DNA of 64,000 nt from Guillardia theta CCMP2712 (GCF_000315625.1 NW_005434672.1:1085374-1149373); one strand, 5' to 3'; positions 1,476 through 63,175 are shown, counted from the first letter of the stretch. Notes: generated by a model not told the origin, from the letters alone. Program-made: numbers and translations.

Positions 1476-2364
1476 GTTGCTCGTGCTCTCGTACGTGGTA
1501 GGGTGCCCACCTACCACTGAAGAATGCCCCAACAAAGACCCTACCCCAGGACGTACAGTCCTTGTCGTTTTGGGTAGGTAGGGGTGGAATTCAGTCTGAA
1601 AAGAGGAGGTTAGAGTAAGAGTAGTGGCATATTGAATATTGGAATATTAGAGAAAATTCCTTTCTATACCCATATCCTTATGTCTTAGTGTGTGCGGTGA
1701 ACGCCACACCCCCCATGTAAATGTGTCATGGAGTCCCCTACCCACATTCGAGAACCCCCTGCTCTCCACACCCTGGGATGCTATCACCCCACCCGTGCTT
1801 AGACTTGAGACAGACCGCGGCACATACGACCTCTACACCCCCTACCCCACAAAACCCTCTATCTGAAATACCCACCCCTGTCTTTGTATCCACCCCCCTG
1901 CCTATAGTTCACCCTCCAGACACCTCGTTCTGTTGCTTGAAAAGTACTACCCCCTTGGTTGGACATTGACGGCATTGGTGGGTACCCACCCCCTCCGTCC
2001 GTTGCAGTCCTCCCAGGAGACGGCAGGGTCGCTTGGGAGAGGCGTAGCTGATCTATTCCCAGGGGTAGGGATGGATCAAGGATGTTTAACAGGCATGGCA
2101 TCTAAGAGCTTCATTTACTTAGAGAAAGGTCTAAGTGATCAGGGGCATCCATGGAGGTGACAGCGTTCATGTCAGCCACTTTCTAGAAGCGCTTGCACCC
2201 ATACATCCTTTAAAAAGTGGTTTTGTTTAAAGTTGACTAGAAAACTATTCTTTCTTGAAAGTTTCACTGAAGATTCTCCCATCCAAGCCCGCACCAAGGA
2301 AGCAAAGTTCATAACGGTTATTTTAACCGTCATCTCATTCTCATACAGCACCACCGGCACTGCC

Positions 2365-3286
2365 ATGGCGCTTGCGCGTGCAGGAGGAGCGGTGAGATGG
2401 TGGATGATGGCGCTCATGGTAGCCATCATTCTGGTTGGAGATGTTTCATCGAAGAGTTTTGAGTCAGATGACGATGACGCTGATGAATGGTCATTATTTT
2501 TAGATCCGCCTGCTTCATTCTGACGAGGTTTCCACAGGAGCACAAAAAGTGACCAGCACACCGCTGTTGTCGATCTGGAGCATATGCTATCTGTGAGACT
2601 CATGTTCTGAAGTTTTATACATCATGATTGATTCCCATCCCCCCCGTTTCTCTCTGCTTCTTCATGCCGTCTCAATGTAGCTCATTTGAACTGAACAGGA
2701 GGAAGATGGGTTTGTATCAAGATCAAAACTTACTTACACGGGGCCAAAGTCAGGTTCGCTCAGGACCAAACGGCACGTCAGTGTTCATGTGCAGCAAGCA
2801 ATTCTCTCAAGCGATGACATGGTGAAGTTTCAAAAGCTCATCGACAGTCATGGCTATTACAAGTTGCGGGTGCAGTCTGATGTAAATGACCCCAACTCAG
2901 AAAAAGTGATGGCTTCTCTACCTGCATGCCTGCTGGCTGCCTCGAACTTTCATGAGATGCTTCGATTCCATGTGGATCAACATGGCCACATCAGAAGCAT
3001 CTGGTACCAGACGATGGTGACCGAGTGTCCGCCAAGTATCAAATTGAGTGGGGGGAAATCTCCGATAGTCACAAGTCTAACAGTTGACATGGAATCAAAG
3101 GGACCCAAGCTATCCATCGAACCAGTAGCAAAGATCGAGAAGGAAGCACAGGAGAAACAGCAACAGGATCAGCAGTCTTTCTTCAAGAAATATTGGTATT
3201 ACATCATTGGAGGCGTTCTGATCATGAGCCTTCTGTCTGGACCGGAGGACGATCGAGGCCGGGGAGGAGCACGTGCAGCACGGTAA
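2365..3286 (+). CDS. EMC10: ER membrane protein complex subunit 10-like (spliced)
   Basis: N-terminal signal peptide (MALARAG...MVAIILVG), then YYKLRV...ASLPACLLAASNFHE..RFHVD and the C-terminal SFFKKYWYYIIG transmembrane segment typical of EMC10. Internal exon boundaries are approximate. Confidence 0.8.
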
Positions 3287-3604
3287 TCTTAAGAGCAGAA
3301 TCTCTCTCAACTCAAATCTACGTGAGGCTGCATTATCATCCTGTTTTCTCATGCACAATTCGGCATTTCATGTGTAAAATCAACAGTAAAAGTGAAAATA
3401 AATGCCTTTGGCACTCAATCTAAATGAATCACGATCCACCCAGGGGCCTCGCAAATCAAAATTTGCGATGCCAGTTGGCAGGCTGAGGTCTCGTTTTTTT
3501 ACGGAATTAACCAGACAAACCACCAACTAAGACGGCCATGTACCACCATGCCTGATGTTAAATATGGAAACTAGCACTTTAAATCTAAAGTCGCTCGGCC
3601 CCCT

Positions 3605-4804
3605 TCATCGCCCGTTGCATCGCTTTCTGCGAACTTGGGACTGGATCCTGGTGGCGGCTTCGTCTTCAGTCAACATTCCTTCTTCGGGGTAGATCGAACC
3701 AATACTGCCATTTTTCAACTTGTGGTTCTTGATCAGCACAGAGTAAGACCCAAGAGTGAGATCGATGTCTTCTTGTCCAAACAGATGGCAAAGAGTGTAA
3801 AGTGCCAACTGCAATCAATCAACCAAAAAACTCATCTCAAGAATTCAAGAACCTCAAACTCGGGGGAAGCTCCGACGAAAGAGGTTCCCTTTGGTTTCAG
3901 ATAACCGTTCCACTCAAATTGGATCGTGATCAGCTACACATTTCAAAACTTTTCAGACAAGTTTGAACTAGCATAGATCACCTGCTCCTCGTCCAAGCCA
4001 GACTTGAGACTGTTGGTCCCTCGCCTCCTTGGCTTGATGTAGCCGGCGTAGTCGAACTTTCCATTTCTTTCTTCATGAAAGAGCTGAATCCAATTGTGCA
4101 TTCCGATGACAGAGCCATCCCGTATCTACTTCACGAGATCAAGAACGTGGTCAAAAATATTTGTTTAAGGTGTAACCTCTCCCACGAAGACATGTTCGAA
4201 AGGTGATGAGTCCCCGCGTACCTGATGGACTGTCAAGGTTCCATTCGATTTGTTCAATAGTTTGCTTAACCTCTCTGCTGTAGAGCTTGAACCACATGTT
4301 CTGAAGAAAAATCTTGAGGTCAGACTCCGATTTGACTTTCTGCTTCTTTAACAGATACTGGTAGAGGTACTGTCCGATTGGCGTCTCGATGACCGCCTTC
4401 AAGAAACTGTCCTCTTCATCTTTCTCCTCCTTTGTAACTACTTCTGCATTGCCAGTGTGAGCCTCGTAATTGTCCAAGAGAGATATGAAGTGCTTGAACG
4501 TTTCTCTCTCAAAGACTTCATCTTTCACCCAACGAAAGAGAGGATCTGGAGCAAGGTCGCCCTTGTGCCACGAGCTGTTCTTGCCTTTCTGCATGTTGAC
4601 TGCATAATCCACGCCAGGTTGACACCGTTGCACGTCCAAGAGCCATAGCCGCTCGCAGGCCAATTTAAAGTCTTGTAGTTCATGAGTTGTCGGTGTCACA
4701 GAAGCTTTTCTTTCCTGCACGGGTGGCTGCTGCGACGGGAAGTGGCGCCGAATCAAGTCATTCAACCATGCTTGTAAATTTTGTAGATTAGGGGCGTTGC
4801 CCAT
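3605..4804 (-). CDS. ENDOU: Poly(U)-specific endoribonuclease of the XendoU/EndoU family with a C-terminal IQ-like motif (spliced)
   Basis: LWLLDVQR, FISLLDNYE, WFKLYSR, DSSPFEHVFVGE, GMHNWIQ, FEWNGYLKPKGTSFVGASPEFE and LALYTLC across exons; the catalytic His-His-Lys residues are present. Confidence 0.9.
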
Positions 4805-5520: not shown

Positions 5521-5911
5521 AAACAATCAGGAGAGTCGAGGAGGCTTGACCCTGACACTGTCGCACCGACCAAACGGCGAAAAGAGAAAAGACTGCGAGA
5601 ACCACTGACCTAATCCTGCCGACTAATACTTTGAGTAAATACTATGATAACTTGCAGACAGGCTGCCCGGCGGGTACGGTAACAATCGCTCCGAGGCCCT
5701 GAGGGCGCGGCTAGTGCACTGCCCGGCGGTTCACGGTTGGGCCCGACAACGGTTGCTTGCCAGGATCCGCAACTTGCGGTTCCTGCCAGTGCAGCGACTC
5801 GGAAAGAGGGAGCGGAGAGGAGGAGCGAGGTTGAGCGAGGAGACGATCCTTGGCTGCGTTGCAAGGCTCTACTGAGATGCCATGGTGACTGAGTCCGACT
5901 GATTTCTCGAC

Positions 5912-8798
5912 ATGCTGGACGGGATCAATTTCGCTGGATGCACCAACGACAGAGAGTTCTCTGAGATCGAGCTGATCAGCGAGCTCATCATCTCCTACTT
6001 CCCCAACACAAGGTTTGTCCGACATGCATGTCACCCCTGCGAATGGCGGCACTACCGAGAGATGATCTGCCGCAAGTACGGGTTCGAGCATGCGGGCGAG
6101 GGCTCGATCGTGTGGCAGCGAGACGGCAAGCTGATCGGGGGCCAAGGAGAGTTGAAGAGGATACTCGAAGAGAAGTATCAGATAGAGTGTAGCTCCCACA
6201 TTCACAGCGACATGGTGCAACAACTCTTGGAGGAAAACCAGCGCCTAATGGACGAGCTCGTGGTGACAGACGGCTGGACGCCTTTCATAGGAGAGTTCCA
6301 CAAGGTCTGGAAAGAGAGGAACGAGAGTTTTGAAGGATCATGGTTGAATCACAAACCGCACAGAGGAACGTATGTCTACCATGATGGCTCCAGGTTGACG
6401 ATGAATTCTTGGACCGTTAGTTCTGATGAAGATGTAGATACGAAGGAGAATTCGTTGATGGGCATTTTGAGGGGAAAGGTCGGCAAACTTACAAAGATGG
6501 GTCGGAGTACGCTGGATCTTTTCAAAATGGCAGAAGACATGGAAAAGGTGATGGAACTATCAAGTAATGCCGGTGCTGACGGTTTTGTTTCAGGCTGGTA
6601 TCGAGATGCTGAAGGGAATGTGTATGATGGAGAATTTCTGGAAGGAGTCTGTCAGGGAGTTGGAACGAAGACCTGGACTTTCGGAAGGACTTACAAAGGG
6701 GAATGGAAACACAACAAGGCAGATGGATTGGGAGAGGAGAGCATTCCTCAGGAGGGAGATTTTCTTTTCTACTCTGGAGAGTTCGTTGATGGCAAGCGGT
6801 AATGGAGATGTCTTACCCCCGTCACCATCTATCCTGATATCATGTAGGTGTGGGTATGGCCAATGTCATTATCCGAATGGTAATGTTTACAAGGGAGACT
6901 GGAAAGACAACAAGCGTGAAGGAAAAGGAGAACTGTTTATCTTCGGGCATCCCTTGAAGCTACAGGGAGTATTTGAGGACAACACTTTCATAGGCGGGAC
7001 CTTCCGATATGATGACGTCACTACTCCCTACCCAGGAGAGGTAAGTGGATGTTGCCCAACAACTCCTCGCGACTGGCGGTGATTGTTGTCTTCAGGTGAG
7101 ATTGAACCCTCAAGGGAGCTCGGATTACTTCGACTCATATGAGTTCAAGAAAGACATCCTGCAATGGTTCGACCATGTCCAACTTCGAGCTCCAAGGAAT
7201 CAGAAGCATCCGCAGGCGTTGTGGCAGGACGGTTCCTTCTTGTCCAAGTACATCAGCAAGGAGCAAGCTGAGAGCCTGTCTTCAAGAGTCACCTCCTTGG
7301 GTCTTCAAGCGCATGATTGCATCTTGCGGGTCAAGGGCAAGCCATGTATCGTCGCTCCTGACTCTGGCGCCTTCCGGCTCTTTCCTGAGCTGCTCGTCCC
7401 TGCCATCAGAGAACGTCATGACCGGTTCGAATCGTCAGATCCACTGGAAGCAGATCGAGTGGACCCCTCGCAGCTGAAACCGTTTGACTTGTCGGAGATC
7501 AAAGCTGTCAAACGAGTCATGGTGAAGGTCTACCGCAACATCGACAGCTACGCGTTCATGTCCTCCATCAACCTAGATGAGCTCATCGAGATAGAGAAGC
7601 TCGTGCTGGAGTTCCTGGAAACAGAAGAGACATGCAGGGGAACATACTATCCGCTCTCGTCCGATGACATTCCTGTAGAAGACAAGAAGTGGCTTTTCTC
7701 AGGCAAGCAGCATGTGCTTTTAGTATTGCATAGCTGAAAATCATGGCAGAGAACATGTATCTGAACAAGTTCGATTGTGACTCCACCTTGGAATGGCCAA
7801 AATCTCGAGGGATTTTCATCAGTGAAGCAAGGAAGACGATGCTTCATGTTAATGGAAAAGAGCACCTTTGCTTCCTCTTCCTCTCCTCTCCCAGTCAACT
7901 CCCTGCCTACCTTGATTCGATGTTTGACCTCATAACTCGTTTTGAGGACTTTCTCAAGAGCAAGCAGCGTCAGTTTGCGAGCATGTACATGTTTATCCCG
8001 TGAAACCTTCACATGACGTTGTCGCCAGGAACCTGTTCGGATACCTGTACAACTCCATCGGCTTGTTGGGAACGGGCATGGAGATGAAGACGCAGGTGGT
8101 GTGTCCTGAGCTAGCGAAGCGAGAGGCTCTCTCAGCCATCTGCCGTTGCTTCGAGCTTGACTGTGACAAGCACGAGGGAGCCCTTCAGCTTCTCTCGCAC
8201 AGCAGCATCAACGTCTCTGAGTCGACCATGATCTCCCGCCTGCTGCACGCTTGTCGACAGATCTCAAAGGCAGAGCTGATCCTCCAGCAGGACCATAGCA
8301 GCCTCGACGTTTGGGAGGTGAAGCCGATCTTTTCCCTGCTGTCAAGCTCGCTGGACGCGAAGAGTCTGTCTCGAGTGGCAGCTTTCATCTCACAGAAGCT
8401 GCGCGTCAGAACTTTCATCGGCGATGACAGAGAGGAGGTGGGAAGTTTTCAAACTGATCAGGCGGAAGTCGACTATGAGAGCATGTCCTCGTTCAGAGAC
8501 GAAGGATGTATCTACATCAACTTTCCTTTTACAGCAAAACAGGTAAAACTCTCATCCGATGTGATGGATGACTTGCTGACGCTCCTTCAAGGTCGCAGCT
8601 CTTGCAGAGCGCCGCATCCTGCCTCGGAAGATTCTATTCATTGAAAGTTTGCAGGCACAAGACAATCCGAGGAGTGACAAAGTGAAATCAAAATTAGAAG
8701 AAGTTATGAGAAACAGAAGTTGCAAGATTGACATGATGAAGGCTCAGGTCGAATCCGATGAATTCTTGTATGACGTCTTGGAGGTTCTTGTGAATTGA
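5912..8798 (+). CDS. Multidomain protein: MDH1B/PPIL6-like N-terminal domain, MORN repeats, degenerate ATP:guanido phosphotransferase domain, possible adenylate-kinase-like tail (spliced)
   Basis: MORN repeats YDGEFLEGVCQGVG, YKGEWKHNKADGLG, YSGEFVDGKR and YKGDWKDNKREGKG. Arginine-kinase-like SFLSKYISKE..TSLG, VAPDSGAFRLFPELLVPAIRERH, RGTYYPL, WPKSRGIF and GYL...LGTG. Final stop TGA at 8796-8798. Confidence 0.75.
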
Positions 8799-53072: not shown

Positions 53073-56000
53073 AATTTATTGTTTGAGCATGGTGAGGTTA
53101 CAGTGAGAGCAGGAGAAGAAACACACTTTACAGGCGAACGAGCAAAAAATCAGAGCATGGAGGAGGCGAGGGGGCAAGGCAAAACTGGCGCGTTAGGGTA
53201 GGACGGGGAGGAAGGAGAGTGGGAGAGGAGGAGGAGCCTGTCAGCTGGATGTTACACCTGCTGCTATGTCGATGTTCACTTCCTCTAACGCCTTCCCCTT
53301 CCCCTCAACAACCCAGAATGTCCTCATATCCTGCATGTCCTGTCAGTATCAGCCCTCCTCCTCCTCGTCCTCGTCCTCCTACCTCCTCCTCCTCCTCTAC
53401 CACCTCCTTTTCCACCTGTTCTTCCCTAGCGCGCCAGGTTTGCCTTGCCTTTCTCCCTTCCCTCCCTCCCTCCCTCCTATCGCGCTTCCCTCTCCCTCCC
53501 CCGTTCCCATCTGATCCCCTGCTCCTCCTTCCCCTCCTTTTAGCACTCACCCCTTTGCCCTTGACTTCGATCACCCCCCTCTCCACCAGCTCAACCACCC
53601 CCCCGACGTCCTGAGCCCTCAGCAGCTCCGCAGCTGCTTCTGAGCACTGGATAGACCCTGGGCGAGAGCTGGACTCCATCCTGGAGGCTGTGTTCACCGT
53701 GTCTCCGAACAGACAGTAGCGCGGGTTCCTCGCTCCTACCACGCTGGCAACGACTGGGCCGGAGTGAAAGCCGACGCGGAGGTTGAGGAAGCCCCTGCTC
53801 GCGTCCTCCCGGTCGATGGGGATGCGGTGAGCGAGCTCGATGGCCTTGAGGGAGAAGGAGGCGATGCGGAGGGTGTGGTCCGAGCTCTGATCCTCCACTA
53901 GGTTCGTCACCGCCATGTACGCGTCCCCGACGGTTTCCACCTGTGCAAGGGGTGAGTGAGAGGAGAGAGGAGAGGAGAGAAGAAAGAGAGTTGTAGGACG
54001 AGGAGATGGGAAGAACAAGAGAAAGCAAGTGAGAAGGGCTGGATGAGAAAGAGAAGAGGAGGAGGACGACGAAGGGGTAGGAGGAGGAGGAGGAGGAGGA
54101 CGAAGGGGTAGGAGGAGGAGAGCAAGGAGGAGGAGATGCATACCTTGAAGACCCCATATTCTTTGGAAAGCTCATCGAAGGACATGTAGAGGTTGTGAAG
54201 CATCTCAGATACTTTCTGAGGGTCGAGGGAGGAGCTGATGGTGGTGAAGCCGACGATGTCAGAGAAGAAGATCGTCACGCTCTCCTTCCTCTCAGGCTCC
54301 ACCCTCTTCCCGGCCTTCAGCGCGTCCGCCACGTGCCTGGGGAAGACCTCGTACAAGATCCTAGTCGCGTCCGCCTCCTCCGCTCCCGCCTTCTTGACAG
54401 GCAGCAGGAGGTCTGCGGCTTTGGAGTCCATGGCCTGCAGTCGTCGATCGATCTCGCTGATGGAGGGCCGGCTCTCGGGGATCTTGTTCCAGCAGTTCCT
54501 CATCAGCACCGCCATCTGTGACGGGCAGTCGGCAGGTATCTCCGGCCTCTTCTCCTCCTCTCTCTCCAGATCCGCCACTTGCCGCAGCACCTGCCTGACG
54601 TCCTCGTTGAGGAACGGGTCCTGCCTGCTGTAAACCTCCGCCAGGAGGATGCCGAGCGCGTACACGTCGCTGGCGAGGGAGTTGCTGCCTCCTCGCAGCA
54701 GCTCCGGGGCCATCCACAAGGGTGTGCCGCATGGACCCGATTTCTTGGTGCTCAACCCGAAGTCCGCGATCTTGGCTCGGAAGCGAGAGTCGACCAGCAC
54801 GTTGTGAGACTGAAGGAGGGAGAGCAAGCTGTTACAGTCGGCAGCGAGGAGGGGAGGGAGAGGGAGGAGAGAGTGGAGAGGGCGGGAAGGAAGCAGGGGC
54901 GATGGAGTAGGAGCAGCAGGAGGGGAGGGGAAGCGCGGCAGAGAAGGACGAGGAGATAGAGTACCTTGATGTCCCCGTGTATGATGGGAGGGTTCGCAGC
55001 GTGGAGGAAGTGTATCCCTTGTGTCACGTCGCAGAGCATGGGGAGGATGAGGTCTCCCTGGAGCTCGACCGTCTCGTTCCTCAAGAGCTCGTACAGGGAC
55101 CCGTTCTCCATGAGCTCCATCACCAGCAACGGCTCCTTCTTGTCCTTCACCGCTCCGATCACCGTCGTGATGCAAGGGTGTCGCAGGCGCGAGATGACCC
55201 TCATCTCTTTGATGAAGTTGTTGTACATCCTGCTGCGGGACGCCGTCCGGGTCGTGCCCGAGAACAAGAAAGAAAGGAACGACGTCGTACGACTGCCGCT
55301 CCCCTGATTCCTCCTGTCTCCCCTGAGCACGTCCAGGCTATCCGAGTTGCTACCACTTCGCATTTGGATGTTCTTGTCGCCCCGGATGCTCACCTCCACG
55401 TCACTGCCCCCGCTGCCGTTCCTTGCTGGGGCCTGCCTTCCCTGACTGTCATTGAGCCGACGGGGGCCTCTACCGCTGAAATCAACGTCAGGCACAGAGC
55501 TCGCGCTCGTCTCGCCGTTGGTCCCCTCTCGCTGATCAGAGCCCCGACCCAGCGAGCCGCTCTTCGTTCCCGAGTGGCTCCTCAGCACGCCGTTCTGCGT
55601 CGACCCGCTCCCTTGCACCCTGATCGCCTCCAACACCGCGGGGTCCTGCATGGAGAACATCCCGGTGGAGACCGAGGCTTTCTTGGCCGTCTGTGACGAA
55701 GGGAGCACTCGTTTCACCGCCACGTAAGAGCCGCGGAAAGAGGCTCGGATGACAACGCCGTAGCTCCCCTTGCCGAGCACAAGAGGAGGGCTGTCGAAGA
55801 CGAGCTCGTCCTTCCTGATCGTCCAGAAGGCATCCGAGTGTGTCATCTTGTACGTCGCGAACGCAGACATGGCGATCAAGACTACCACTCCAGCGCACAG
55901 CACGCCGATCATCCATGGCTGCAAGACGCTGTCTTGCACGCAGTCAGCGTCGGGGTGCTGCCTGGTGCGGTGTTTGCCAGCAGGACAGGGAGCGCATTTG

Positions 56001-57449
56001 TCGAGGGTATTTGACAAGAGGAAAGTGAGCTTGCAAGATAGGTTCTTGATGGTCGGGACGGCGGAGTCATCTGCCCCTAGCAAATAAGTGTTTACAGCTT
56101 CGAAGATGAGGTTTGAGTAGCCGTAGTGGTCTGGTCGAGTACCAAGGTCAAAGTAAGCTTCGTTGATAAATTCTTTTTGGTGAGTGATGAAGTTCAAGCT
56201 CTGCGCGTTCACGGTGCAGATGTCGGGATCAGGCAAGGTCGCACAGAGCTCCTTCTCAACATAGTCCTGAGCATTCAGCAGGGTTGGATAGTCTCCATTC
56301 CTTGCCTTGAAAACCTGCTGATTGTACGACGCGAGGTATTTCACCACCTTCTTCGTAGCCTCCAACGACTTGGTGTACCTGTTCACAGACCAGCCCCAGA
56401 ACCACGGGTTTGTGCTGCTCTGGTCGCTTGAAAGATACCCGGGGATGCGCGTGTAAGACGAGCGATTGCCGAAGCTGTGCTCCTGGCACTTGAACACGTT
56501 GAAAGGCTCGATGCAACCGTCGGGCTTCCACGTGTGGATCTCTCCGATGATGTGAGTGAGGTCGATCATGAAAGCTGCTCTCTCAAGTAGGAAGTCGAGC
56601 TTCGTCAGCTGCAAGTCCTCGTTGATGACCACTGCCGGCGTGATCCAACCGATCCACTTCCTCATCCTCTCCAGCGCTGCGACGGCGTTGGGGTTGTCGA
56701 TGTCCACCTCTCCCTTTGAATTCACGATCGCCCCGCCCCCATGGCTCGCGATGATCGACATGGTGATGACGGTGAGGTACTCGTTCGCCTGGCCCTGCCA
56801 CATCAGCCCCCAGAAGCAAGTTTCTCCCGGACACAGGGCTTGTCGCTCGCCCTCCTGGATCTTCACTGCCATCGCCTCCATCTCATCCCAAGTCCGCGGC
56901 GGCTCATGGTAACCGTACTTGTGCAGCAGGTCTCGCCGGTAGTAGAGCAGGTTGTAGTCCATGAACGAGGGGATGGACAGAAGCTTGCCGTGCGCATATC
57001 CTGCTTGGAGGAACTTGGGGTCGAACTGCTTCAGCTCGTCTGCGGTGAAGAAGGAGGAGAGGTCCATGAGTGAGTCCTCGATGCTATGTATCCACGACGC
57101 CTCCATCCTGAAGATGTCGAGCGGGCTCGCTGCATCAGGCTTTGCGTATCTGTTCTTGATGTACAGAATCTCGTCCTCAAGGTTCGGCGGGCAAACCACC
57201 CTTCGAAGATTGATGCCCTGTGCGGCCATCTGCAGCTTGGCCTCGGTGAACTCAGTGTTGTGACGGATCATGTTGCTGCCAGGATTCCAGTATACATCCT
57301 CACTGCTGACGATGGGCAGGATGGCACAAGAGAGGATAACAGTGAACAAGCGTGTGATGTGTACAGGAGCAAGGGAGAGTAGAAGCATGCTAGCAAGCGA
57401 GAAGAGGGGTATTGTCAGGGGAGGAGGAGAGCTTATAGTGTGCTAAGCA
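53071..57449 (-). repeat. Left arm of a ~4.4-kb inverted duplication (partner 58610-63075)
   Basis: Near-identical reverse complement including 5' flank, introns and 3' UTR to AATAAA. Confidence 0.95.
53241..57388 (-). CDS. Receptor kinase-guanylate cyclase with an extracellular sugar solute-binding (SBP_bac_1-like) domain, copy A; 3 introns
   Basis: Signal peptide; [20 protein letters not shown] (SBP); CAPCPAG; TM helix; kinase [22 protein letters not shown]; cyclase [17 protein letters not shown] and [17 protein letters not shown]. Confidence 0.93.
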
Positions 57450-58670
57450 CTAGTGTACCGCTTCAATTTTTCATTTCATCTTGAGAATGCCATTCATGGA
57501 GCGAAGTCCTGAAAAGCGCGTAATTAGTACATTTGATGTGAAAGTGAGAGTTACTTGTAGTTATGAAACGATAGAAGTCCAGCTCTGAAAACATCTTCAT
57601 ATTCTCTATGTTCATTTCCCATCCATCTCTCTATCTCAACCCGCCCGCCATTGATCCGCACTTCTTCCGTACTTCCACAAGTCATCTGACCCCTGCATTT
57701 TGGCGCCCACCCCCGTTAAAGTTGCCCCACCCTTCTCACTCAAGGCAAGCACACCCGTTCACTGCAAAAAAGAACCAGCTATACCCCTGCAATCCACTTG
57801 AGTACCCCCAATATGTTCCTTCTCACTACCCCTACCTCAAACCACCCCACCTCTCAGTCTCGTACGTCTCCTTGCTTTAGTCATGCACCCTACCCCCTCC
57901 AGTCAGTCATCACAAAGGAAAGATATGGAGCCTTCGGGTACCACGGGTGCTCTCGTGACACACTTACTGAACCCCCGCTCCCCTGCTCTACCTGAAGTCA
58001 TAATTGTACCAGAAATAACTAAAATTTCAATGGAAACCCCTTGATGAGTAAAACTGGTGACCCTTTTTATTTTAATGGTAAAAAAACCATTCAAGTTACA
58101 AGCAATCTCAAGGCAAGGCCTCTGAGGCGGGTCCGATCTCCATCTGCTCTAAAATACTAATAAAAATTTGTAAACCGACCAAATAAAATATTTTATAATT
58201 CTCCTGGGTCCCGGACAACGCCGGGTCCCCCCCTGCGGGCCGCCGGTGTGATGGCCGGCTGGCCGCCGGTCACTCAGCAATGCAGGGAGGCTGTTCTGGT
58301 AGGGTGTGACTTGATACGGAACCACAATGAAGGAGGGTGGGGTGGTGTGCTGACAATATCATTTGGGCACTACAGGGGTTGTTTTCTCAAGAATTTGTTG
58401 GAAATGGAGGGGTGGGTCCTGTATACCGATCTGCAGATACAGGAGGGAGATCCGACCACAAATGGCAGCAAGGAACAAGCAGCTCATGGCGGGTGGGATG
58501 CAAGACAAAGATGTCAAGAGAGGAGTGAATGAGCAGAGGACACTAGAAACATCTGCTACAAACAAGAATGCACAGCGCTGACGGGTTTCCCGGCATGAAA
58601 TCGTGATGCTGCTTAGCACACTATCAGCTCTCCTCCTCCCCTGACAATACCCCTCTTCTCGCTTGCTAGC

Positions 58671-61600
58671 ATGCTTCAACTCTCCCTTGCTCCTGGACAC
58701 ATCACACGCTTGTTCACTGTCATCCTCTCTTGCGCCATCCTGCCCATCGTCAGCAGTGAGGATGTGTACTGGAATCCTGGCAGCAACATGATCCGCCACA
58801 ACACTGAGTTCACCGAGGCCAAGCTGCAGATGGCCGCACAGGGCATCAATCTTCGGAGGGTGGTTTGCCCGCCGAGCCTTGAGGACGAGATTCTGTACAT
58901 CAAGAACAGATACGCAAAGCCTGATGCAGCGAGCCCGCTCGACATCTTCAGGATGGAGGCGTCGTGGATACATAGCATCGAGGACTCACTCATGGACCTC
59001 TCCTCCTTCTTCACCGCAGACGAGCTGAAGCAGTTCGACCCCAAGTTCCTCCAAGCAGGATATGCGCACGGCAAGCTTCTGTCCATCCCCTCGTTCATGG
59101 ACTACAACCTGCTCTACTACCGGCGAGACCTGCTGCACAAGTACGGTTACCATGAGCCGCCGCGGACTTGGGATGAGATGGAGGCGATGGCAGTGAAGAT
59201 CCAGGAGGGCGAGCGACAAGCCCTGTGTCCGGGAGAAACTTGCTTCTGGGGGCTGATGTGGCAGGGCCAGGCGAACGAGTACCTCACCGTCATCACCATG
59301 TCGATCATCGCGAGCCATGGGGGCGGGGCGATCGTGAATTCAAAGGGAGAGGTGGACATCGACAACCCCAACGCCGTCGCAGCGCTGGAGAGGATGAGGA
59401 AGTGGATCGGTTGGATCACGCCGGCAGTGGTCATCAACGAGGACTTGCAGCTGACGAAGCTCGACTTCCTACTTGAGAGAGCAGCTTTCATGATCGACCT
59501 CACTCACATCATCGGAGAGATCCACACGTGGAAGCCCGACGGTTGCATCGAGCCTTTCAACGTGTTCAAGTGCCAGGAGCACAGCTTCGGCAATCGCTCG
59601 TCTTACACGCGCATCCCCGGGTATCTTTCAAGCAACCAGAGCAGCACAAACCCGTGGTTCTGGGGCTGGTCTGTGAACAGGTACACCAAGTCGTTGGAGG
59701 CTACGAAGAAGGTGGTGAAATACCTCGCGTCGTACAATCAGCAGGTTTTCAAGGCAAGGAATGGAGACTATCCAACCCTGCTGAATGCTCAGGACTATGT
59801 TGAGAAGGAGCTCTGTGCGACCTTGCCTGATCCCGACATCTGCACTGTGAACGCACAGAGCTTGAACTTCATCACGCATCATGACGACCTCTTTGGAGAC
59901 TTCTACCTTGATCTTGATACTCGACCAGACCACTACGGCTACTCAAACCTCATCTTCGAAGCTGTACACGAATATTTACTAGGGGCAGATGACTCCGCCG
60001 TCCCGACCATCAAGAACCTATCTTGCAAGCTCACTTTCCTCTTGTCAAATACCCTCGACAAATGCGCTCCCTGTCCTGCTGGCAAACACCGCACCAGGCA
60101 GCACCCCGACNNNNNNNNNNNNNNNNNNNNNNNNNNNNNNNNNNNNNNNNNNNNNNNNNNNNNNNNNNNNNNNNNNNNNNNNNNNNNNNNNNNNNNNNNN
60201 NNNNNNNNNNTGCAAGACAGCGTCTTGCAGCCATGGATGATCGGCGTGCTGTGCGCTGGAGTGGTAGTCTTGATCGCCATGTCTGCGTTCGCGACGTACA
60301 AGATGACACACTCGGATGCCTTCTGGACGATCAGGAAGGACGAGCTCGTCTTCGACAGCCCTCCTCTTGTGCTCGGCAAGGGGAGCTACGGCGTTGTCAT
60401 CCGAGCCTCTTTCCGCGGCTCTTACGTGGCGGTGAAACGAGTGCTCCCTTCGTCACAGACGGCCAAGAAAGCCTCGGTCTCCACCGGGATGTTCTCCATG
60501 CAGGACCCCGCGGTGTTGGAGGCGATCAGGGTGCAAGGGAGCGGGTCGACGCAGAACGGCGTGCTGAGGAGCCACTCGGGAACGAAGAGCGGCTCGCTGG
60601 GTCGGGGCTCTGATCAGCGAGAGGGGACCAACGGCGAGACGAGCGCGAGCTCTGTGCCTGACGTTGATTTCAGCGGTAGAGGCCCCCGTCGGCTCAATGA
60701 CAGTCAGGGAAGGCAGGCCCCAGCAAGGAACGGCAGCGGGGGCAGTGACGTGGAGGTGAGCATCCGGGGCGACAAGAACATCCAAATGCGCAGTGGTAGC
60801 AACTCGGATAGCCTGGACGTGCTCGGGGGAGAGAGGAGGAATCAGGGGAGCGGCAGTCGTACGACGTCGTTCCTTTCTTTCTTGTTCTCGGGCACGACCC
60901 GGACGACGTCCCGCAGCAGGATGTACAACAACTTCATCAAAGAGATGAGGGTCATCTCGCGCCTGCGACACCCTTGCATCACGACGGTGATCGGAGCGGT
61001 GAAGGACAAGAAGGAGCCGTTGCTGGTGATGGAGCTCATGGAGAACGGGTCCCTGTACGAGCTCTTGAGGAACGAGACGGTCGAGCTCCAGGGAGACCTC
61101 ATCCTCCCCATGCTCTGCGACGTGACACAAGGGATACACTTCCTCCACGCTGCGAACCCTCCCATCATACACGGGGACATCAAGGTACTCTATCTCCTCG
61201 TCCTTCTCTGCCGCGCTTCCCCTCCCCCTCCTGCTGCTCCTACTCCATCATCCCTGCTTCCTTCCCGCCCTCTCCGCCGTCTCTCTCCCCTCCTCGCTGC
61301 CGACTGTAACATCTTGCTCTCCCTCCTTCAGTCTCACAACGTGCTGGTCGACTCTCGCTTCCGAGCCAAGATCGCGGACTTCGGGTTGAGCACCAAGAAA
61401 TCGGGTCCATGCGGCACACCCTTGTGGATGGCCCCGGAGCTGCTGCGAGGAGGCAGCAACTCCCTCGCCAGCGACGTGTACGCGCTCGGCATCCTCCTGG
61501 CGGAGGTTTACAGCAGGCAGGACCCGTTCCTCAACGAGGACGTCAGGCAGGTGCTGCGGCAAGTGGCGGATCTGGAGAGAGAGGAGGAGAAGAGGCCGGA

Positions 61601-62905
61601 GATACCTGCCGACTGCCCGTCACAGATGGCGGTGCTGATGAGGAACTGCTGGAACAAGCTCCCCGAGAGCCGGCCCTCCATCAGCGAGATCGATCGACGA
61701 CTGCAGGCCATGGACTCCAAAGCCGCAGACCTCCTGCTGCCTGTCAAGAAGGCGGGAGCGGAGGAGGCGGACGCGACTAGGATCTTGTACGAGGTCTTCC
61801 CCAGGCACGTGGCGGACGCGCTGAAGGCCGGGAAGAGGGTGGAGCCTGAGAGGAAGGAGAGCGTGACGATCTTCTTCTCTGACATCGTCGGCTTCACCAC
61901 CATCAGCTCCTCCCTCGACCCTCAGAAAGTATCTGAGATGTTGGACAACCTCTACATGTCCTTCGATGAGCTTTCAAAGGCGAGTGGAGTGTTCAAGGTA
62001 TGCATCTCCTCCTCCTCCTCCTCCTCCTTTTGTCCATGTCCTCGTTTCCTTCTAGTCTTTCCCCTTTTCCTGCTCAACCTTGTCTCCTCGTCCTACTGCT
62101 GGTCAACCTGCCTGCATCCCTCCTTGCTCTCCTCTTTCTTTTCTCCTCCCTGTTCTCTTTCCTTTCTTCCTGTTTTTATCCTCTCTCCTCTCACTCACCC
62201 CTTGCACAGGTGGAAACTATCGGGGACGCGTACATGGCGGTGACGAACCTCGTGGAGGATCAGAGCTCGGACCACACCCTCCGCATCGCCTCCTTCGCCC
62301 TCAAGGCCATCGAGCTCGCTCACCGCATCCCCATCGACCGGGAGGACGCGAGCAGGGGCTTCCTCAACCTCCGCGTCGGCTTTCACTCCGGCCCGGTCGT
62401 TGCCAGCGTGGTGGGAGCGAGGAACCCGCGCTACTGTCTGTTCGGAGACACGGTGAACACAGCCTCCAGGATGGAGTCCAGCTCTCGCCCAGGGTCTATC
62501 CAGTGCTCGGAAGCAGCTGCGGAGCTGCTGAGGGCTCAGGACGTCGGGGGGGTGGTGGAGCTGGTGGAGAGGGGGGTGATCGAAGTCAAGGGCAAAGGGG
62601 TGAGTTCTAAAAGGAGAAGGAGGAGCAGGGGATCAGATGGGAGCGGGGGAGGGAGAGGGAAGCGCGATAGGAGGGAGGGAGGGAGGGAAGGGAGAGAGGC
62701 AGAGGGGAGGGGAGAGCGAGGGAGGAGGAGGTGGAGGAGGAGGTGGTAGAGGAGGAGGAGGAGGTAGGAGGACGAGGACGAGGAGGAGGAGGGCTGATAC
62801 TGACAGGACATGCAGGATATGAGGACATTCTGGGTTGTTGAGGGGAAGGGGAAGGCGTTAGAGGAAGTGAACATCGACATAGCAGCAGGTGTAACATCCA
62901 GCTGA
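58671..62905 (+). CDS. Receptor kinase-guanylate cyclase with an extracellular solute-binding domain, copy B; 3 introns; internal N gap
   Basis: Same motifs as copy A; last exon [10 protein letters not shown]...VTSS* with stop at 62903-62905. Confidence 0.92.
60111..60210. other. Assembly gap (100 N)
   Basis: N run. Confidence 1.
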
Positions 62906-63075: not shown

Positions 63076-63175
63076 NNNNNNNNNNNNNNNNNNNNNNNNN
63101 NNNNNNNNNNNNNNNNNNNNNNNNNNNNNNNNNNNNNNNNNNNNNNNNNNNNNNNNNNNNNNNNNNNNNNNNNNN
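63076..63175. other. Assembly gap (100 N)
   Basis: N run. Confidence 1.

Follow-up and report, generated by a model that had tools for sequence, protein, structure and literature searches.

Textbook accounts usually treat receptor guanylate cyclases (GCs) as an innovation of animals (and choanoflagellates) that pairs a type I ectodomain with a dead kinase. According to one kinome study, receptor guanylate cyclase (RGC) kinases are found mainly in metazoa and choanoflagellates (bioRxiv 10.1101/168187). Other described systems include the receptor nucleotidyl cyclases of Acanthamoeba and giant viruses, which are flanked by Ser/Thr kinase domains (PMC4053784), the class C G protein-coupled receptor (GPCR)-like receptors of Allomyces and chytrids, which bear SBP_bac_1 and other periplasmic-binding-protein (PBP) domains (Krishnan et al. 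2012, PMC3251606), and the receptor-type guanylate cyclases of the diatom Seminavis, many of which react to exudates from bacteria and to acyl-homoserine lactones (PMC6688387, PMC7296067). Here we describe a gene, termed copy 1, on the minus strand of a 64,000-nucleotide window of the cryptophyte Guillardia theta CCMP2712 (GCF_000315625.1 NW_005434672.1:1085374-1149373; the window is the whole stretch analysed, and positions are counted from its first letter), together with its inverted neighbour, copy 2. Copy 1 is a genuine gene and a novel form of receptor guanylate cyclase, in which an ectodomain of the bacterial solute-binding-protein (SBP) type is joined through one transmembrane (TM) helix to a kinase and a cyclase; our literature searches found no published account of an SBP_bac_1-kinase-GC receptor. 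Overall, we read the two genes, with a probability of about 65%, as an expressed pair of single-pass receptors in which an SBP sensor stands on a cassette of active kinase and GC, the product of ectodomain swapping, with two specificities.

The analysis of the minus strand reveals a coding sequence of about 1190 codons, with its ATG at 57388 and its TGA stop at 53243-53241, in four exons that are all in phase 0 (Table 1). The first-pass annotation had placed a gene at 53241-57388, and the protein strings quoted there ([62 protein letters not shown]) all lie in frame. An open reading frame (ORF) of 878 codons begins at the ATG; it contains, in order, a signal peptide, the SBP-like domain, CAPCPAG, a helix of hydrophobic residues and the N-terminal half of a kinase, and then runs on into CT-rich sequence. 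Exon 1, which is followed by a donor GT at 54964, is one ORF, and its single translation carries both the SBP_bac_1 and the kinase Pfam matches; with SBP, TM helix and kinase fused in one exon, the ectodomain is no stand-alone periplasmic protein or lipoprotein serving an ABC importer. Splicing, which the annotation had implied, was examined with contigs of public runs aligned to 53100-57500, for which the run type (RNA) was guessed; the spliced joints identify the contigs as cDNA. Joints at 54809|54965, ~53940|~54144 and 53330|53551 confirm that all three introns are removed. Contigs of the X1 set match copy 1 with 0-2 differences, and those of X3 and X4 show copy 2 letters, including the variant patch described below and the differing end of exon 2, which shows that both genes are transcribed. 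In the raw RNA-seq run X16, depth was close to nil in the 6% sampled. The signal peptide and single TM helix proposed earlier are likewise borne out by hydropathy, which found only two hydrophobic segments (aa 1-~28 and aa ~487-511), pointing to a signal that is cleaved and to one membrane crossing, with the SBP on the outer side.

Taken alone, the N gaps near copy 2 and the bacterial type of the SBP might suggest that the fusion is spurious, be it a chimeric assembly, contaminating bacterial DNA or a defunct gene copy. Yet SBP, TM helix and kinase N-lobe are encoded by a single unbroken exon, exons 1-4 are represented in spliced contigs from several studies, both copies are intact, and orthologues occur in Hanusia and in an environmental contig, so that an artefact is improbable in the extreme. 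The artefact or pseudogene reading was rejected on the transcript contigs and the intact second copy.

Profile, Protein Data Bank (PDB) and sequence searches were conducted exon by exon, and the fold model was limited to the ectodomain. The trehalose/maltose-binding-protein-like ectodomain recognised in the first-pass annotation ([34 protein letters not shown]) is upheld by profile, structure and phylogeny. SBP_bac_1 matches aa 88-358 in Pfam with E 3e-14 (54 bits against a cut-off of 26), phmmer against the PDB reaches the Thermus alpha-glycoside-binding protein family (6J9W/6JAM) at E 8e-42, with about half of the residues identical over aa 63-254 (the N-lobe, ~190 aa), and a profile of 31 relatives matches the whole chain of 6J9W at E 8e-167. 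These observations were further strengthened by an AlphaFold2 model built on the 31-relative alignment (mean pLDDT 87.7, pTM 0.86), whose best Foldseek matches are the trehalose-, maltose- and glucose-bound forms of the 6J9W family (E 1.6e-34, TM-score 0.85 by target); the ligand-free form of the same protein scores lower (0.70), and the next matches are T. maritima MalE3, T. litoralis TMBP and sulfoquinovosyl-binding proteins. An NCBIfam equivalog name cannot be assigned, since all NCBIfam matches to the ectodomain were sub-threshold (best 29.7 bits against a cut-off of 299). The ectodomain holds 11 Cys, mostly as close pairs within insertions that are not in its bacterial relatives (whose median is 2), and two N-glycosylation sequons.

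The ligand site was examined at the four residues named as mutated in the PDB titles of the solved homologue (R49, D118, W287 and R356 of 6J9W). Two are kept in copy 1 (D118 as D144 and W287 as W331) and two are changed (R49 to E73 and R356 to H403). Glu at the R49 position is common to all members of the eukaryotic VYWNPG clade defined below, and His at the R356 position occurs only in the cryptophyte kinase-GC group, the bacterial rows all having Arg except the outlier P0007 (Tyr). Most family-invariant SBP positions are retained in the alignment. The ectodomain is a genuine member of the sugar-SBP lineage with a remodelled site, for which a glycoside-like ligand is a reasonable guess and not a result. 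That the ectodomain instead senses a non-sugar, such as a charged or amino compound, an osmolyte, a bacterial metabolite, or a protein or glycan partner, is a tentative alternative. It would accommodate the two changed residues, the extra aromatics (PWFWGW), the eukaryote-specific Cys-bearing insertions and the use of the same SBP clade on several unrelated receptor scaffolds; against it, the residues matching D118 and W287 and the bulk of the family-invariant positions are unchanged, every one of the best structural matches binds an oligosaccharide or glycoside, and the model lies nearer the liganded closed form than the open one. In the one-component nutrient or small-molecule sensor envisaged in the first-pass annotation, the bacterial-type SBP origin stands, but a sugar or nutrient is no more than a candidate ligand in view of R49->E and R356->H.

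Comparison with copy 2, which the first-pass annotation of this gene did not mention, draws attention to the same site. The two copies are 95.6-97.6% identical in DNA, and comparison of their first 480 codons found 16 amino-acid differences, 12 of them within aa 404-434. The copy-1-type patch is also found in an environmental Guillardia-like contig (P0001) and the copy-2-type patch in Hanusia phi (P0002). This distribution would fit two old binding-site variants inside otherwise homogenised genes, and the concentration of differences in the ligand-site patch suggests two ligand specificities.

The kinase match (PK_Tyr_Ser-Thr/Pkinase, PF07714/PF00069) is split over exons 1 and 2, with E values from 1e-16 to 1e-23. 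The kinase is TKL-like and retains all canonical catalytic motifs, including HGDIKSHN (with Asn downstream of HGD), DFG and APE; the Gly loop, VAVK, HGD, DFG and APE listed earlier for a TKL-type kinase could all be read in the sequence. A 163-aa Ser/Gly/Arg-rich insert (aa 562-724) separates beta3 from alphaC. The best PDB matches of exon 2 are GC-C (8FX4) and full-length GC-A (9BCV), in alignments that span the kinase C-lobe, linker and cyclase, followed among kinases by the TKL members CTR1 and MLK1, and also by ABL.

Relatives of the cassette were sought with the exon-2 residues, taken from the contiguous genomic reading of copy 2, against proteins of full-length range, which gave at least 460 proteins at E <= 1e-20, a family far larger than the related kinase-cyclases of other algae that had been guessed at earlier. 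Represented among them are diatoms (Seminavis, Fragilaria, Skeletonema, Cylindrotheca and others), the choanoflagellate Salpingoeca rosetta, Hanusia and many metagenomic or transcriptomic sources. Across our searches as a whole, the nearest named relative is from Hanusia phi (67% identity). All of the best 120 (120/120) combine kinase and Guanylate_cyc, and the kinase motifs recur among them (HGD in 107, DFG in 117, VAVK in 103 and the Gly loop in 109), a conservation that speaks for selection on catalysis. At the N-terminus most of them have Phosphonate-bd or ANF_receptor/Peripla_BP_6, with PBP_like_2, PAN and FG-GAP also present, and an SBP_bac_1/8 ectodomain is found in four of the 120 (P0037, P0040, P0125 and P0078 from Seminavis).

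Phosphotransfer by the kinase is predicted at the level of these motifs. A less probable account, in our estimate, holds that the kinase is an ATP-binding regulatory module only, like the kinase homology domain (KHD) of animal receptor GCs, with cGMP as sole output; the cassette indeed runs collinear with GC-A and GC-C, in which the kinase-like domain has a regulatory role, and it has HGD instead of HRD and a short activation segment. However, the catalytic Asp and DFG are gone from animal KHDs (the alignment shows DYG and ITDFG, with S/T replacing Asp), while the Gly loop, VAVK, alphaC Glu, HGD, Asn, DFG and APE are kept in more than 100 divergent members of the protist family, which is hard to explain without catalysis.

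The cyclase was recognised on exons 2 and 3 by Guanylate_cyc (PF00211; E 1e-11 and 5e-24, 45.2 and 85.3 bits against a cut-off of 21.9). Aligned to 3ET6, the two metal Asp, the transition-state Asn and Arg and the Glu/Cys pair for GTP are in frame ([18 protein letters not shown], [17 protein letters not shown]); the first-pass annotation had pointed to a class III cyclase with the GTP-type Glu (KVET), the Cys (RYCLFG) and both metal Asp, all of which are present, and the Asn and Arg as well. The best PDB match of exon 3 is the Chlamydomonas GC 3ET6 (2e-26), the mammalian adenylate cyclase AC5 (8SL3) ranks second, and rhodopsin-GC (RhGC; 6SIR/6AO9) and GC-A also match. In the best 120 relatives the first specificity position is Glu in 93 and Asp in 3, the motif pattern being unmatched in 24. 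Synthesis of cGMP is predicted from these motifs. An inactive or cAMP-making cyclase, in a protein that would mainly be a receptor kinase, could be entertained in that two residues cannot prove specificity, but we regard it as very unlikely: all six canonical catalytic positions are present, including the Glu/Cys pair, the closest solved structures belong to guanylate cyclases (3ET6, RhGC and GC-A), and Glu prevails among the relatives as counted above.

To place the sensor, the ectodomain was searched exhaustively against 1.84 billion representatives. Besides its own cluster (P0001), it has only five close kin (P0004, P0005, P0156 and two fragments), below which lie hundreds of bacterial SBPs; in the longer matches this kind of SBP is joined to 7tm_3 receptors, to a cyclase, to a kinase, to a bacterial hybrid histidine kinase and to BTAD regulators. 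Several of these proteins have architectures of their own. P0004 joins a VYWNPG-type SBP to 7tm_3, P0003 and P0008 (from a Polarella-like dinoflagellate) and P0005 join it to GCC2_GCC3 Cys repeats and a multi-pass membrane region, with a C-terminal TIR_2 added in P0003, and P0156 (885 aa, metagenomic), among the closest non-receptor relatives of the ectodomain, is a tandem double thuE-like SBP. The Cys module of copy 1 had no Pfam match when the exon 1 translation was scanned.

The SBP-domain phylogeny that had been proposed as a check (85 rows, LG+G4, quick search, SH-aLRT support only) places all 16 eukaryotic receptor-fused SBPs in one group within the bacterial thuE-like proteins (SH-aLRT 93), and inside it a VYWNPG clade with support of 100 sets the cryptophyte kinase-GC genes beside the 7tm_3 and GCC2/TIR proteins. 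In a tree of the cassette (127 rows, 226 columns), copy 1 groups with other Guillardia/Hanusia-type paralogues (support 86-94), apart from P0037 and P0040, and the ectodomain types are interspersed, the SBP label needing at least three changes on the starred branches. The SBPs of P0037 and P0040 branch separately within the eukaryotic SBP clade, and their cassettes likewise cluster away from that of copy 1, which suggests separate fusions. Read together, the two trees suggest that this SBP entered eukaryotes once, long ago, and that sensors were shuffled repeatedly onto a stable kinase-GC chassis. With regard to public models, P0002 (EukProt, Hanusia phi) reads through intron 1, passing after HGDIK into low-complexity sequence and then out of frame, and P0001 is a similarly unspliced gene call; public cryptophyte models of this gene family therefore end before the cyclase.

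The same chassis is repeated in the genome of G. theta itself, which was searched in six frames (87.1 Mb assembly, 669 contigs; all counts are lower bounds). The kinase-GC cassette occurs at about 11 loci and the cyclase exon has 49 matches, and no SBP_bac_1 was found beyond the two local copies in this search, itself a lower bound. The upstream ORFs of the paralogues on C76, C4 and C19 encode ANF_receptor ectodomains (E 1e-30 to 1e-45), and the ectodomain of the C305 paralogue shows nothing recognisable. The nearest kinase-GC paralogues are a pair at C7:562500-577900, 65% identical in the cyclase exon and inverted head-to-head, whose ectodomain is weakly PhnD-like (a Phosphonate-bd match below the cut-off); P0035, an MMETSP transcript, looks like a full-length orthologue of this pair, with Phosphonate-bd, kinase and GC in precomputed Pfam. 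Inverted duplication thus seems to be a recurring mode of growth of this receptor family. The presence of ANF_receptor-kinase-GC genes in the same genome and the homology of the cassette to GC-A and GC-C mark copy 1 as an ectodomain-swap variant in a broad family and not an isolated invention. The contrast with animal receptor GCs drawn in the first-pass annotation therefore needs this qualification.

Further loci were noted in the course of this search. The paralogue at C12:943100-953000 (ORF 5612-8359) has a weak PBP_like_2 (PstS-type) ectodomain match, and two additional kinase-GC cassettes lie at C69:58593-59544 and C36:173417-174382, the former with two in-frame TGA codons, so that it may be a pseudogene or contain an intron. 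At C76:252000-261900, an ORF at 1573-4347 (-) encodes 925 aa with an isochorismatase (E 3e-30), a weak TIR-like match and Guanylate_cyc (E 3e-43) without a kinase, an unusual cyclase architecture. The genome also holds at least 96 matches to cyclic-nucleotide-monophosphate (cNMP)-binding domains, so readers of cyclic nucleotides are plentiful.

These findings can be joined in a working mechanism. A Venus-flytrap-type extracellular domain descended from bacterial trehalose/maltose-type ABC SBPs, joined via the Cys module and TM helix to the kinase, linker and cyclase, would close its two lobes on a small polar ligand (glycoside-like, and not necessarily trehalose or maltose), and this closure would re-orient the TM helices within a dimer. 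The kinase domain would bind ATP and probably phosphorylate its own Ser-rich insert, other substrates or both; in GC-A, the N-terminal region of the KHD is phosphorylated, which offers an analogy for the insert. The helical linker would then align two cyclase domains into an active homodimer making cGMP, to be read by the many cNMP-binding proteins of the genome. Copy 1 belongs to a large protist family of HGD-kinase and GC receptors whose ectodomains have probably been exchanged many times between modules of the PBP fold.

Several points weigh against this interpretation of the pair as sugar-SBP receptors with an active kinase and a swapped sensor. With two of the four probed residues altered (R49->E and R356->H), the ligand may not be a neutral disaccharide; HGD stands in place of HRD in the catalytic loop of the kinase, whose N-lobe is interrupted by the 163-aa low-complexity insert; and the key branches of the trees are moderately supported (88-94 SH-aLRT in a quick LG+G4 search), where long branches could draw the eukaryotic sequences together. 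It should also be noted that the six-frame genome search with PF13416 returned nothing, even at copy 1, though PF13416 is listed for the near-identical relative P0001; having missed copy 1 itself, such searches can only give lower bounds. A broader and doubtful proposition, which we put forward as a possibility, is that animal receptor GCs are a kinase-dead branch of an older dual-output HGD-kinase and GC family in which PBP-fold sensors of both types were exchangeable, that a bacterial thuE-like SBP entered eukaryotes once and was shuffled onto kinase-GC, 7TM and TIR scaffolds, and that the Guillardia pair are two ligand-specificity variants that stay distinct at the binding site, their remaining sequence being homogenised by gene conversion.

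Table 1. Features of the two receptor genes and their surroundings (positions in the window; aa, residues of copy 1)
Feature	Position	Strand	Remarks
Copy 1, whole coding span	53241..57388	-	4 exons, 3 introns; 808+222+130+29 codons + stop; from ORFs, exon translations and spliced contigs
Exon 1	54965..57388	-	808 codons; signal peptide, SBP ectodomain, Cys module, TM helix, kinase N-lobe; ends HGDIK (catalytic Asp 806)
Intron 1	54810..54964	-	GT..AG, CT-rich; spliced out in X1 and X3 contigs (joint 54809|54965)
Exon 2	54144..54809	-	222 codons; kinase C-lobe (SHNVLVD, DFG, APE), rGC-type linker/signalling helix, cyclase start FFSDIVGFT (metal Asp), VFK
Intron 2	53941..54143	-	GT..AG; X1 contig unbroken across 53558-53938 then 54142-54616
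Exon 3	53551..53940	-	130 codons; cyclase core VETVGDAYM (second metal Asp, specificity Glu), [17 protein letters not shown] (specificity Cys, Asn, Arg), KGKG
Intron 3	53331..53550	-	GT..AG, purine-rich on gene strand; joint 53329/30|53550/51 in X3 and X4
Exon 4	53241..53330	-	29 codons + stop; cyclase end DMRTFWVV, short tail; contigs continue into 3' UTR (untranslated region)
Signal peptide (aa 1-28)	57305..57388	-	Hydrophobic windows, KD (hydropathy) >= 1.6; conserved mature N-terminus VYWNPG directly after, in all relatives
SBP ectodomain (aa 29-450)	56039..57304	-	thuE/TMBP-like, eukaryote-specific Cys-bearing insertions; Pfam, PDB, fold model
Variant patch (aa 404-434)	56087..56179	-	Aligns with R356 segment and following helix of 6J9W
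Short Cys module CxxCPxG...C (aa 452-483)	55940..56035	-	Alignment; single unit of the type repeated as GCC2_GCC3 (PF07699) in P0003/P0005
Single TM helix (aa ~487-511)	55856..55930	-	Hydropathy windows up to 2.5
Kinase N-lobe	54965..55816	-	Gly loop GKGSYG, VAVK (K559), insert aa 562-724, alphaC Glu 728, HGD (D806)
Spacer between divergent start codons	57389..58670	.	1282 bp, shared 5' region; inter-copy similarity reaches 61 bp upstream of each ATG (blastn)
Copy 2, inverted paralogue	58671..62905	+	Exons 58671-61184, 61332-61997, 62210-62599, 62816-62905; same 4-exon structure; intact
Assembly gaps	60111-60210 and 63076-63175		100 N each; the first replaces a few codons just before the copy 2 TM helix

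The significance of this locus is that the chassis of animal receptor GCs occurs in an alga and there carries a kinase that is intact and a type II sensor of the bacterial sugar-binding kind. Sister genes with other PBP-type sensors, in Guillardia and in many protist genomes, are natural ectodomain swaps on one chassis, a set useful for understanding how Venus-flytrap closure is transmitted via one TM helix and what role the kinase had before turning into a pseudokinase, and for the design of ligand-to-cGMP biosensors. Moreover, an ectodomain with close solved homologues is a tractable entry to a first ligand for the diatom receptor-type guanylate cyclases that have been linked to bacterial cues.

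Compared with the animal receptor GCs (GC-A/NPR1 and GC-C), copy 1 shares the PBP-fold ectodomain, the single pass, the kinase-like domain, the helical linker and the class III cyclase, as well as the pre-cyclase linker motif, the Glu/Cys GTP pair and a kinase C-lobe-linker-cyclase order collinear with 9BCV and 8FX4. It differs from them in its ectodomain, which is a type II MalE/thuE-like SBP_bac_1 with no ANF_receptor on exon 1, whereas theirs is a type I ANF_receptor (PF01094), in keeping the HGD catalytic Asp, DFG, VAVK and Gly loop where theirs is a pseudokinase KHD, and in its Ser-rich N-lobe insert of 163 aa. The protist HGD-kinase and GC receptors, annotated as 'receptor-type guanylate cyclase' in diatoms (e.g. 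Seminavis robusta) and as 'TKL/DICTY4' in Salpingoeca rosetta, share the cassette (47-60% identical over exon 2) with the same motifs, but most of them carry Phosphonate-bd or ANF_receptor ectodomains. With the bacterial alpha-glycoside and trehalose-maltose SBPs (the Thermus 6J9W family, T. maritima MalE3, T. litoralis TMBP and ThuE), copy 1 has in common the fold and the D118/W287 equivalents; the bacterial proteins feed a transporter, whereas here the domain is a receptor ectodomain with the new N-terminus VYWNPG, Cys-bearing insertions and the R49->E and R356->H changes. The class C (7tm_3) GPCRs of early-diverging fungi draw on the same SBP clade as the ectodomain, in which P0004, P0006 (chytrid), P0204, P0260 and P0273 are found, and they differ in that their output is a 7TM domain and not a kinase and cyclase. 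Finally, the Acanthamoeba and giant-virus cyclases, compared by their published description, are likewise protist single-pass receptors with an apparently active kinase and a cyclase, but are arranged in the order kinase-cyclase-kinase and bear other ectodomains.

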